Positions 38,810 to 51,313 of a DNA stretch of 64,000 bases are shown one piece after another. The position numbers and the translations under genes were made by a program. Position 1 is the first letter of the stretch. Each line of letters starts with the position of its first letter. Source of the stretch: Octopus sinensis. Its lineage: Eukaryota. The DNA is taken from assembly GCF_006345805.1 (NCBI RefSeq), contig NC_043021.1, forward strand, positions 1,674,001 through 1,738,000, in the 5' to 3' direction. The notes beneath the pieces are model-generated. The model did not search any database and was not told the DNA's origin. It was given only the letters and a program-made list of their open reading frames with translations.

Positions 38810-38937
38810 ATGAAAATTGAACTCTTGATCGGTGTCTTCCCATGGCTGTGTATTTTAGCTTCGTCAACATCAAGCGTTGTAAACAACACGGACAACGAGC
38901 TCGGTCCCCTTCGGAACGTTTGTGTTTCAACGATATC
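38810..38937 (+). CDS. EMI-domain type I receptor, coding exon 1 (signal peptide + start of EMI domain)
   Basis: ACC-ATG start; MKIELLIGVFPWLCILASSTSSVVNNTDNELGPLRNVCVSTI-S. Acceptor tttcag at 38758-38759, donor GTAAGT at 38938 (phase 2). NVCxxxxS followed by a phase-2 intron matches the MEGF10/11 EMI exon layout as I recall it. Confidence 0.88.
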
Positions 38938-38968
38938 GTAAGTACCATCCCCTCAAAAACTTCTATGA

Positions 38969-39011
38969 CCCTAACCCTAACCCTAACCCTAAACCTGACC
39001 CTAATCCTAAC
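38969..39011 (-). repeat. Short (TTAGGG)n-like tract
   Basis: CCCTAACCCTAACCCTAACCCTAAACCTGACCCTAATCCTAAC, ~30 nt into intron 1 of the EMI gene. Confidence 0.6.
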
Positions 39012-39752
39012 TCCTCTGTAGTGTCGGCGTTTAGTACCAGACTGTTTAGAGGTGGTGTCTTTTATCTTTTACTTGTTTCAGTCATTAGACTATGGCCAAG
39101 CTGGGGCACTGCCTTGAAGAATTTTTAGTTTAGTGCAATGGTTCTCAATTGGGGTTCTTATAGCTCTTTGGGATCCATATAAAGCCCTGCATTTAATTAG
39201 TCGTGCTTTTACAATACACAAAATATTTTAAGAATTTCTTAATTATACAATTCCTAATAATATTTCATTATAAAAATATAAGAGGATTTTTTAAACATAG
39301 GCGCATGGTTCCGGGTTCAGTCCCACCGCGTGGCACTTTGGACAAGAGTTCTCTACTATAGCCTCTGGCCGACCATTGCCTTGTGAATGGATTTGGTTGA
39401 CGGAAACTGAAAGAAGCCCGTCGTAGATATATATATATATATATATATATATATATACATTCATATATATAACAATATGACAACAAAAGAATAGACCTCG
39501 ATATCGGTAAATAGAGGAATTTATAAATGTATAGTTTAGGACAATCAGTAAGCTGTCATAATAGGACAACTTCTTGATTGTCCTAAACTACATACACGCG
39601 CGCGCGCATATGTATATATTCTTAGAAGCTGTAGTCTATTCTTAGCTACAATAGCGACAGCATGAATTTCTTTCATCTTCTTGCTCTGTTAAAATACTTA
39701 AGAAAAATTATATTAGTGTGTTCTACTTGTTAAAATTCCATTTATTTATTTG

Positions 39753-39838
39753 TGCTGCTGAAGATGGTACTGAATTTAAATTGATATAGTGATTGCATTG
39801 TTCAATTAAATGGAGTCGCTTGAAACGATCGTACCGCA
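39753..39838 (+). ncRNA. Type I hammerhead ribozyme, core intact but helices partly decayed (intron 1 of the EMI gene, sense strand)
   Basis: Core CUGAAGA 39758-39764; extended, mismatched helix II (U.U at its base); GAA 39822-39824; palindromic helix III ACGAUCGU; GUA triplet; helix I UGCUG/CCGCA with one mismatch. Confidence 0.6.
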
Positions 39839-39973
39839 TTACTACTTGATATCCTGTTGCTTATTTTGATTTTACCATTTCTTAGCTCTTAGCCTCTTCT
39901 TTATTTATATTCTTTATATTTATTTATTTAATCATTTATTAATTTATCTATTTTCTCTTTCCCTTTTCTCTAG

Positions 39974-47863: not shown

Positions 47864-47937
47864 TGAAATCCCGTGTGACAGAGAAGTCCTCGCTCTTCCA
47901 CCAAACTCACGAAACAACTGCTGGGACTTACCTGAAG
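47864..47937 (+). CDS. EMI-domain receptor, coding exon 7 (cytoplasmic)
   Basis: Acceptor ggttttttacag, donor GTATAT (phase 2-1); EIPCDREVLALPPNSRNNCWDLPE. Confidence 0.78.
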
Positions 47938-48821
47938 GTATATATCTCTCTCTATCTCTCTCTCTCTCTCTCTCTCTCTCTATCTATCTATCTCTCACTC
48001 TCTCTCTCTCTCTCTCAGGCTGCCTATATATATGTGTGTTTGTGTGTGTGTGTGTGTGTGTGTGTATCTGTCTGTCTCTGTCCGTGCATGTATCTGTCAA
48101 CAAATGTATCCATCCATCCATCTATCTATCTATCTAAATGTCTATATATATATAAAGGAATACAAAAAATGGGACAAGAACGCAAAACATCCAGACAGAT
48201 GATACAAAAAAAAAAGGACAAGAAAAAACAAGGACGGGTCATTCTGAGTTTTCTTTCCTCAGTTGAGTTCCAGATTATCTTCGCAATTTCGGCTGATTAT
48301 TCTTCAGATTGCTCCAATCTGGCCAACCCCAAGGAAAAACTAAGCTAAGAGCACTAGATTCCTTGGAAGAAAGCAGCGAATGTATACGAAAACAAGGACG
48401 GAAAAAAAACGGAGAAATGGTACACAAATACAAATGCAAACAACAAGACATTAACAACAGGTGTCTTTCGACTAAGGACGAATTAAATTAAGCTGGCTTG
48501 TGTGGAAGAGAAGCCTTACAGCAGGGACATAAGAGATGACGGGCATGGGGAGGAACATAGATGTTGCACGGATTCTATCTATCTATCTATTCATCCATCC
48601 GTCTATCTAATCTATCCATATATCCATCTATCTATCTGTCTGTCTCTCTGTCTAATTATCTGTCTGTCTATCTATCTATCTATCTATCTATCTGTGTCTT
48701 TCTATCTATCTCTCTATCTACCTATCTATCTATCTGTTTGTCTGTCTGTCTGTCTGTCTGTCTCCCTACCTCCTTTGCCAGTACATTCATGTCTCGTCTC
48801 GTCTCTCTCTTTTACGTAAAG

Positions 48822-48933
48822 GTTTAAGCTGTAACGTGGCGGCACCGGATGAGAATTACTACGTTAGTATGAACAACGGTTTCACCTCGGAAACACCCAA
48901 CGTCAACAGGATGCTCTCCACACGAGGCTCTCG
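48822..48933 (+). CDS. EMI-domain receptor, coding exon 8 (cytoplasmic, YYVSM motif)
   Basis: Acceptor after a CT-rich tract (..tttacgtaaag), donor GTATGT (phase 1-2); LSCNVAAPDENYYVSMNNGFTSETPNVNRMLSTRGS. Confidence 0.78.
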
Positions 48934-50265
48934 GTATGTAGCATCTCTCTGTCTAGCTTCCTACCACCCATACATCCAGATACATGCATACATCTACATA
49001 TATGCGTGTGTGTATGTGTACGTAGACACACATACGCACACACACATATACATAATATTTACGAATACACACGTGCACCATGCACATACACGGATATGTA
49101 TATATATATATATATATATATATATATTATATATATATATATATATACGTGCCATCATCGTCATCATCATCATTTAATGTCCGTTGTCCATGCTTGCATG
49201 CATTGGACGGCTTGACCAGAGGTGGCAAGGAGAGGAGCAGTACAAGGCTCCAGTCTGATTTGGCCTGGTTTCTACAGCTGGATGACCTTCCTAACACCAA
49301 CCACTCCGAAGGTGTAGTGGGTGCTTTTACGTGCCACCGGCACAGGAGCCAATCAGGCGGCACTTGCAACGACTACGCTCGAATGGTGTTTTTTACGTGC
49401 CACTGGCATGGGTGCCAATCAGGCGGTACTGTCATCGGCCACGTCAACGACTTCACTTGCGTCAACAGGTCTTCACAAGCAAAGTTTATTGCCCAATGAT
49501 TGAAGGGTACTCTTCAATGGACTGGTTATGCTGCACTGGCATAGGCCACGGTTATGGTCTCACTTGGCTTGCTGGGTCTTCTCAAGCACAGCATATCTCC
49601 AAAGGTCTCAGTCACTTGTCATTGCCTCGGTGAGGCCCAATGTTCGAAGGTCACGATTCACCAGCTCATCCCAGGTCTTTCCTATCTGCTTATTCGTTTT
49701 GACAGAAACATATATGTAGGTTCATCTTACGTTTTTTTTCCTTAACTTTTTTGAGCTTTAAACTTCAAATCTATTAGCAATGTGTTTTTTAAAAAATGCC
49801 ATCTTTCTACAACGTTCAAATAAATCAGCAATCACATCCATTTTTCATCTGCTTGTTTCTCCATATACACACACACATACACATATATACATATGTATGT
49901 ATATATATATATATATATATATATATATATATATATATATATATATATATATATATATATATATATACGTGTTTGTGTGAGTATATACGCACACACATAT
50001 ACATATATGTATCTATTTAAGAATATGCGTGTATATATGTTAGTTTTAACATCTCTTATACACCACTAACCCCAACCTGTGTAATATTTCATACTACACT
50101 ATGCCAAACCAAGCAACACCATCCTTTCGCTACTTCACTGCATCAACCCAAACAACAACAATAACAACAAAATCAACAGAACAGTCTTTAACCATTGTTA
50201 AATAAATAAGTCCTATGTTGTTTTTTTTTAATTTTGCTCTAATTGTTTTTCTTCTTTTTTTTTAG

Positions 50266-51313
50266 GTACAGATTTGATGACCTCGAGGAAGGAAACTGCG
50301 GCGGCAGGACCCGAGGAGACACACTTTATGTGCTCCCTGATCCAAAATTTGGGCAAGGAAATGCGAAAACCTGCAGGATAAGAGAGGAGCCTGAACAGAA
50401 TTGTGGTAGTTCTTCAGATATTTACGTCAACGAGAGGCCGGAAAGTTCTGAAGGAACCTCTGCTAACAACGACAACGATGATATATACTCAGAAATTAAG
50501 AGCAGCACCAACAACACTTCGCAGCCATTGCACTATGCAACGTACGAAGACATCAACCAAGATAACAAGACGGATGTTAACGGCAACGGTAGAGGTGGTC
50601 GTGGTAAGGATGGCAGTGGAAGAAGTGATAAGGCTAAAGGCGAATTTATGGAACTAACAGACCTTGCAAAGACGAAAAATGAAGATACTTACAACGTACC
50701 AAAATCTCGTTCTAAATTTAACAACCAGAAATCGTCCGACGATCGTGGCGACGATACTGCTGATGGTGGTGGTGCTGGTGCTGGTGACGACCGCAAAAAC
50801 AATAATGGGGATGATGATAGCATTGAAGGGAGTCGCAGCAAAACCTGCGACAGTGGAATCTATATCTATCTGAACAGTAAAGAAGAGGATGACGAGCAGG
50901 AGGACGAAAGTGACATCATTTACAGCGTTCCATATAGCAACAGCAACAATAACAACAGCAACAACAACAACAGCAATTGCAACAACAACAACAACAGCCC
51001 ATCGCACAGTGACTGCATTAAGTGCCCTGACACGCGACAACCAAGAAAACAACGGCGCGCTGCCGTCGTCCAGTCGCACGTCTACCAAAACGCCATGTTC
51101 GATGGCGAAGAAGCTGGACACAGCAACGACGTTGCAAAGACGAACGCTGCCTCGTCACTTTCGTCGTCGCCATCACCGTCTTTATCGTCGTCGTCGTCGC
51201 TGCAACAGTGGCAAAACGAGGGCATGATATACAGAAACGTAGCAGACGATTGTTGCGACGATCAGACTTTGTACCAAGACATCGACAACACAAAGAATGA
51301 GGTCCATGTCTGA
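50266..51313 (+). CDS. EMI-domain receptor, terminal exon 9 (long acidic, Tyr-motif-rich cytoplasmic tail)
   Basis: Strong acceptor tttttttttttag (phase 2). 1048-nt open frame in unique sequence with 14 Tyr, mostly in D/E-x-Y-x-x contexts; ends ...NEVHV* (TGA 51311-51313). Confidence 0.9.

Follow-up and report, generated by a model that had tools for sequence, protein, structure and literature searches.

A nine-exon gene in a 64,000-nucleotide stretch of the Octopus sinensis genome (assembly GCF_006345805.1, contig NC_043021.1, positions 1,674,001 to 1,738,000 of the forward strand; hereafter the window, in which positions are counted from the first base) encodes a type I membrane protein that we propose to be an EMI-headed sensor of contacts or ligands acting as a transmembrane phosphotyrosine scaffold. 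We put the probability of this reading, for what appears to be a single-copy gene restricted to Octopus, at roughly 55%. In the proposed arrangement, the ectodomain would hold one divergent EMI domain as its only folded module, carried on a predicted glycosylated, mucin-like stalk, and the cytosolic tail would be acidic and probably disordered.

The layout first read from this DNA (signal peptide, six-cysteine head, cysteine-free stalk, transmembrane helix at residues 188-208 and long acidic tail) agrees with hydropathy and residue counts. A hydrophobic segment at residues 3-24, directly after the start methionine, fits a signal peptide, and hydropathy marks a single transmembrane helix at residues 188-208, which ends at its cytosolic side in Cys208 and is followed by RRRKK. 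The mature ectodomain measures about 165 residues. Its six cysteines after the signal peptide (residues 38, 63, 69, 95, 96 and 106) all lie in the head, and the stalk beyond them (residues 107-187) is free of cysteine and 47% Ser, Thr or Pro. Three NxS/T sites are found in the ectodomain, N157 and N166 in the stalk and N25 before the head. The tail of 421 residues has an isoelectric point of 4.66 and is rich in Asn (12.6%), Ser (12.4%), Asp (10.2%) and Glu (6.7%), with 16 tyrosines making up 3.8% of it.

The gene model beneath this layout was rebuilt from the raw sequence as nine plus-strand exons spanning 38810-51313 (Table 1), all with GT-AG splice sites and with frames compatible throughout. 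The spliced coding sequence of 1890 nt specifies 629 amino acids and a stop codon, and its translation is identical in every letter to XP_029651034.1 (RefSeq, Octopus sinensis, isoform X1); the exon number, phases and lengths of the original prediction are thus exact. RefSeq also holds two shorter isoforms, X2 (590 amino acids) and X3 (573 amino acids, lacking residues 109-164), and the Octopus vulgaris annotation (CAI9740531-33) contains the same three isoforms with a 76-residue N-terminal extension. Cassette exons 4 and 5 are skipped singly or together, giving a stalk of about 80, 41 or 24 residues and leaving head and tail unchanged. We also considered an 8-exon, 602-residue in-frame model without exon 7 and with an acceptor at 48829, 7 nt further down in exon 8. 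It was dropped, as public models carry exon 7 (the 421-residue model of Octopus bimaculoides, XP_029651034.1 and the O. vulgaris models) and the acceptor at 48822; the 8-exon form may be a minor isoform.

The absence of EGF (epidermal growth factor) repeats, on which the original prediction had staked itself in advance, is borne out by the annotated isoforms and by the DNA between the head and the transmembrane exon. No annotated isoform of O. sinensis (RefSeq) or O. vulgaris contains extra exons between the head and the transmembrane exon, which are only 5 kb apart, and no isoform has a cysteine between residue 107 and the transmembrane helix. Scanning both strands of the window from 30 to 56 kb for the six-cysteine EGF pattern returned microsatellite artefacts only. 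As a positive control, the same scan was applied to two other octopus EMI exons and detected EGF modules downstream of them, at distances of 7 kb and 19 kb.

For the head, three lines of evidence point to an EMI domain. Taken as the spliced 78 residues, it matches EMI (PF07546) better than any other of the 24736 Pfam models, and the alignment covers model positions 1-68 of 69 (18 bits; E = 0.005). Second, the EMI-like domain, which follows the hydrophobic N-terminus at about residues 35-107, has a cysteine spacing of 25-6-26-1-10 with a CC-K-G-F motif, and the spacing in the octopus EMI gene on C2 is 28-6-27-1-13. Third, its introns resemble those of bona fide EMI exons, which a PF07546 scan of the O. 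sinensis genome located on four other contigs. The phase-1 intron follows the last cysteine by three residues, in the same place as in these exons (L003, L004 and L006); the phase-2 intron after the third cysteine lies five residues on here and four in the bona fide octopus EMI genes (exons L003-L006); and the first intron matches exon L005 in phase but differs in position. The intron phases 2, 2, 1 had been put forward as shared with known EMI genes of the Draper/MEGF10 type. Two of the three indeed coincide in position with introns of bona fide octopus EMI genes, but the first lies elsewhere and no Draper orthologue was identified among the genes tested. Since the complete comparison gene looks EGFL7-like, the shared intron structure is a general EMI feature and not one specific to Draper/MEGF10. 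On this sequence evidence, it is probable but not proven that the head is a divergent EMI domain.

The tail bears out the 16 tyrosines, the SH2-type motifs and the lack of NPxY originally listed for it. YxxM is a binding motif of the p85 class of SH2 domain, YxxP of the Crk/Nck/Abl class, YxN of the Grb2 class and YxxI of the Src/Syk type, and the tail contains YVSM; YVLP, YNVP and YSVP; YVN, YLN, YSN, YQN and YRN; and YSEI, YEDI and YQDI. Src-family kinases prefer substrates with a hydrophobic residue at -1 and acidic residues upstream. Ile, Leu or Val occupies -1 at 9 of the 16 tyrosines (1.75 expected), a count reached by none of 20000 shuffles, and Pro, Ile, Leu, Val or Met occupies +3 at 9 of 16 (P of about 0.0006). 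YxxP, Yxx-hydrophobic or YxN is fitted by 13 of 16 (4.3 expected; 0 of 20000 shuffles). The tyrosine contexts in the tail are strongly non-random, and all 14 alignable tyrosines are kept in O. bimaculoides.

Several observations on both halves of the protein weigh against a signalling EMI receptor. The EMI score of the head, 18 bits, lies below the Pfam gathering cut-off of 25 bits; for the full-length protein it drops to 13.5 bits (E = 0.13), and in longer queries to 13.5-14.6 bits. Exon-wise Pfam queries with single exons found no EMI, and the PF07546 scan of the O. sinensis genome missed the exons of this gene even with E values allowed up to 10. Single-sequence AlphaFold2 modeling of residues 24-115, with no alignment, produced an all-helical, unusable model (mean predicted local distance difference test score of 60.7), and a PDB sequence search with the head gave no match. 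The EMI domain as first claimed is thus upheld by a full-model top match, cysteine spacing and intron sites, but not by a score above the cut-off. In the tail, the canonical immunoreceptor tyrosine-based activation motif (ITAM; YxxL/I x6-12 YxxL/I) is not matched; the sole ITAM-like element is the C-terminal YRNV-x10-YQDI at residues 603-620 (YSNV-x10-YQDI in O. bimaculoides). NPxY is absent from the entire protein, the 27 residues added by the 9-exon model carrying no tyrosine. Between the two octopuses, 92.7% of tyrosine-proximal residues are conserved versus 89.5% in the rest of the tail (Fisher P = 0.44), although the two are too closely related for such a comparison.

With the EMI score below threshold, one alternative is that the head is no functional EMI ligand-binding module, its cysteine knot being structural only, and that the protein is a mucin-like transmembrane adaptor (PAG/LIME/SCIMP/LAT-like) that scaffolds other receptors. 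Language-model comparison, in which look-alikes below the 0.9 level serve as leads only, places the transmembrane helix and tail nearest to vaccinia A36 (OPG164) and the transmembrane adaptors SCIMP and LIME1/PAG (0.84-0.88), and Cys208 before RRRKK stands where adaptors are often palmitoylated, as this protein may be. Yet the head is the most conserved part of the protein (a single difference from O. bimaculoides over about 50 alignable residues) and has the cysteine spacing and intron positions of EMI. Moreover, the ectodomains of known adaptors comprise a few residues, against about 165 here. We consider this alternative unlikely.

A further alternative is that the tyrosine motifs do not signal. 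In this case, they would be scattered through a low-complexity disordered tail, with Yxx-hydrophobic sites serving AP-2 endocytic sorting or nothing, and the protein would be an adhesion or matrix-anchoring molecule. The N/S/D-rich low complexity of the tail, the lack of detectable relatives and tyrosine-proximal residues that are not significantly more conserved are what this explanation would predict. It does not account for a tyrosine context that is strongly non-random at -1 and +2/+3, for a ratio of nonsynonymous to synonymous substitution rates (dN/dS) of 0.24 in the tail, or for a tyrosine content of 3.8% in an otherwise polar, acidic sequence, and it seems to us quite improbable.

Conservation was assessed against O. 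bimaculoides, in which all alignable splice sites and frames are kept. In exon 2, the splice sites and frame are retained with 1 amino acid change in 30; the protein encoded by the 3′ part of exon 3 is identical; exon 7 differs by 2 synonymous changes and 1 conservative change; and exon 9 has 88-90% identity. With dS of about 0.19, dN/dS is 0.16 for exons 2-5 (ectodomain) and 0.24 for exons 8-9 (tail), and a dN/dS of about 0.2 indicates that the coding sequence is under purifying selection. The gene also appears to be transcribed sequence in public data: 0.90-0.98 of the sampled words of the last exon occur in 18 transcriptome-sized runs from six studies (contig totals of 24-119 million letters).

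O. bimaculoides itself has fragment models only, comprising a 74-residue "secreted protein" (exons 1-2), a 421-residue protein (exon 7 onward) and a 367-residue protein (XP_014785322.1). Such separate models, one secreted and two tail-only, are what would be expected if the O. sinensis gene were an annotation artefact joining two transcription units, one for a small EMI protein, secreted or membrane-bound, and the other for a cytosolic protein of low complexity. The syntenic O. bimaculoides locus explains them otherwise. Its N gaps coincide exactly with the 5′ part of exon 3 and with the transmembrane exon, so that the counterpart of exon 6 falls in an assembly gap, and the models are fragmented because of these gaps. 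Furthermore, phases are compatible throughout, the transmembrane exon has no in-frame stop before its donor, and two independent annotations join all exons in three isoforms. The fragments in fact confirm junctions 1-2 (in the 74-residue model), 7-8 and 8-9 (the last also in XP_014785322.1). We regard a joining artefact as highly improbable.

At the 5′ end, an acceptor AG at 38758-38759, before exon 1, suggests an upstream exon of the 5′ untranslated region (UTR), and in the O. vulgaris models a 5′ exon is joined to the acceptor just before exon 1. This exon (L018:3001-3180), 26 kb upstream of the signal-peptide exon, provides 60 of the 76 residues of the O. vulgaris extension, including an RERERE stretch. 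Nothing in the 64-kb window matches it as protein or as DNA, so the 5′ UTR exon of O. sinensis lies elsewhere or is different. We treated the 76-residue extension as a longest-open-reading-frame artefact running through the 5′ UTR; in the models from O. bimaculoides and RefSeq, translation begins with the methionine that precedes the hydrophobic segment. Were the extension genuine, the first hydrophobic segment would act as a signal anchor.

The gene looks to be confined to Octopus as far as databases reach, in line with the lineage specificity originally suggested. Searched exhaustively with HMMER against 1.84 billion representatives, the tail matched an Octopus cluster only, and word searches using the tail or residues 1-215 returned Octopus proteins only. 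No paralogues of exons 2, 3 and 9 were found in the O. sinensis genome, by which measure the gene is single copy. None of these searches (HMMER with the tail, word searches with tail and head) recovers CED-1, Draper, MEGF10, MEGF11 or PEAR1. In the language-model comparison, the whole protein most resembles EMI-bearing arthropod proteins, MEGF10/11, Draper and PEAR1, at 0.80-0.85, which again are leads only. The first-ranked look-alike is an arthropod cluster with EMI as its main recognised domain, a hint that membrane proteins with EMI and few EGF repeats may occur elsewhere as well. The protein had been described as a member of the Draper/MEGF10 type with a truncated ectodomain. Its EMI-like head and its lack of EGF repeats and NPxY fit that description, but the link to Draper/MEGF10 comes from sub-threshold look-alikes and from no sequence search, and membership in that family is not established.

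In RefSeq, the protein is named "probable serine/threonine-protein kinase DDB_G0282963". This name is incorrect, since the protein lacks a kinase domain: no kinase family matched in Pfam at E values up to 1, and NCBIfam gave no match. It probably arose from the Asn/Ser-rich low complexity of the sequence. Public records show no domain for this protein because its EMI match is sub-threshold. The claim that no receptor of this architecture had been described holds for the literature that could be searched, which yielded no publication describing an EMI receptor in octopus or a transmembrane EMI protein free of EGF repeats, but the protein itself was already public: RefSeq and UniProt list it under the mistaken name of a probable serine/threonine kinase.

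Table 1. Coding exons of the gene, in positions of the window.
Exon	Position	Strand	Outgoing phase	Content
1	38810-38937	+	2	Start codon, signal peptide, first EMI cysteine (C38)
2	39974-40066	+	2	Middle of EMI-like domain, C63 and C69
3	41144-41247	+	1	C-terminal part of EMI-like domain, CC-K-G-F motif, C106
4	43091-43141	+	1	17-residue T/P-rich stalk cassette, phase 1-1; absent from isoform X3
5	45528-45644	+	1	39-residue stalk cassette, phase 1-1; absent from isoforms X2 and X3
6	46288-46450	+	2	Membrane-proximal stalk, transmembrane helix (residues 188-208), RRRKK stop-transfer
7	47864-47937	+	1	74-nt juxtamembrane exon
8	48822-48933	+	2	Start of tyrosine-motif tail, NYYVSM
9	50266-51313	+		349 codons of acidic N/S/D-rich tail, 13 of 16 tyrosines, stop codon

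How might such a protein work? In Drosophila NimA and in PEAR1, the EMI domain mediates adhesion (PMC13076899), and by analogy the octopus head may engage a ligand or a neighboring cell surface. The phagocytic or pattern-recognition role first suggested for the protein is a candidate function. We speculate that clustering of the protein upon contact would lead Src-family kinases to phosphorylate the tail, which could then act as a multisite SH2 scaffold, with PI3K p85 docking at YVSM, Crk, Nck or Abl at YxxP, and Grb2 at YxN. Src, or tandem-SH2 kinases of the Syk/Shark type, could be recruited at YxxI and at the C-terminal ITAM-like YRNV-x10-YQDI. Splicing of the stalk cassettes may in turn tune the distance to which the head projects from the membrane.

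EMI domains are known from the N-termini of long proteins of the EGF, collagen or C1q kind, which they cap. If the proposed sensor and scaffold is real, a receptor with EMI as the only folded module of its ectodomain would isolate the domain's own role, be it adhesion or ligand capture, and would imply that a head of the Draper/PEAR1 type can recombine with a tail of the adaptor type. The protein also adds a candidate to the poorly known innate-immune and cell-recognition repertoire of cephalopods. A misleading public kinase name can be corrected, under which the protein, with its EMI match below the Pfam threshold, escapes domain-based surveys. More tentatively, and with more doubt than belief, we suggest that octopuses evolved a minimal EMI-only contact sensor with a 16-site phosphotyrosine scaffold and a stalk height set by splicing, as one of several lineage-specific single-pass receptors with tyrosine-motif tails in this genome that could together form a cephalopod-specific immune or neural recognition system on kinases of the Src/Syk type.

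Other features lie within and around the gene. Intron 4 contains a 164-residue open frame (44741-45235, plus strand) that looks like the C-terminal part of ORF2 of a retrotransposon without long terminal repeats (non-LTR); it matched no Pfam family and has no matching stretch there in the O. bimaculoides alignment. A short interspersed repeat, whose translation includes STYFIG and which gives false exon candidates, occurs in several introns of the gene and elsewhere (46470-46560, 40100-40200 and 15603-16262 on the minus strand, among other places). Further along the window, at 57830-61549, a tandem array of a 72-bp unit in 52 copies (95% matches; 285-bp higher-order period) yields long spurious open reading frames on both strands. 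At the other end, a terminal exon at 1698-1928 on the plus strand codes for the last part of an oxidoreductase NAD-binding domain (PF00175; E = 3e-08) and looks like the last exon of a gene of the cytochrome-b5-reductase type. A run of 100 N at 20523-20622 is an assembly gap. In O. bimaculoides, the downstream neighbor of the gene is a LIN9 homologue with DIRP and LIN9_C domains (L001:18663-21332, minus strand).

Among known systems, a complete comparison within the same genome is an EGFL7-like EMI gene of O. sinensis (G000:C2:90174048-90197400; loci L005/L004/L013). The two genes have nearly the same EMI cysteine spacing, with a phase-2 intron after the third cysteine and a phase-1 intron after the sixth. 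They differ in what follows and in how readily they are recognized: in the EGFL7-like gene, the EMI domain is succeeded by an EGF and a calcium-binding-type EGF domain, and its EMI passes the Pfam cut-off exon by exon, at 25.6 bits each. Drosophila NimA, the shortest described EMI-bearing transmembrane member, requires its EMI domain for cell adhesion and continues after it with one NIM and two EGF-like repeats (PMC13076899). By contrast, the octopus protein passes straight from the EMI-like head into a cysteine-free stalk. With CED-1, Draper, MEGF10, MEGF11 and PEAR1 (Jedi), it shares type I topology and an N-terminal EMI-type module directly after the signal peptide. Like those receptors, which use Src, Syk/Shark and PI3K, it would signal through phosphotyrosine. 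Unlike them, it has no EGF, NIM or laminin-EGF repeats and no NPxY, its ITAM-like motif has Val in the first half, and its tail offers 16 tyrosine sites.

The tail instead recalls PAG/Cbp, LIME1, SCIMP, LAT and vaccinia A36, which likewise have one transmembrane helix and a disordered tail, although homology to the octopus protein is not shown. In both cases, SH2 proteins of the Grb2, Nck, Csk and PI3K kind would dock on the tail tyrosines. The adaptors and A36 carry next to no ectodomain and a much smaller number of tyrosines; the octopus protein has the tyrosine motifs of the adaptors PAG, LIME, SCIMP and LAT but not their short ectodomain, its own being about 165 residues with a cysteine-rich module. 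By analogy with both groups, it would work like a contact receptor of the Draper/PEAR1 type fused to an adaptor tail of the PAG/LIME/SCIMP type.

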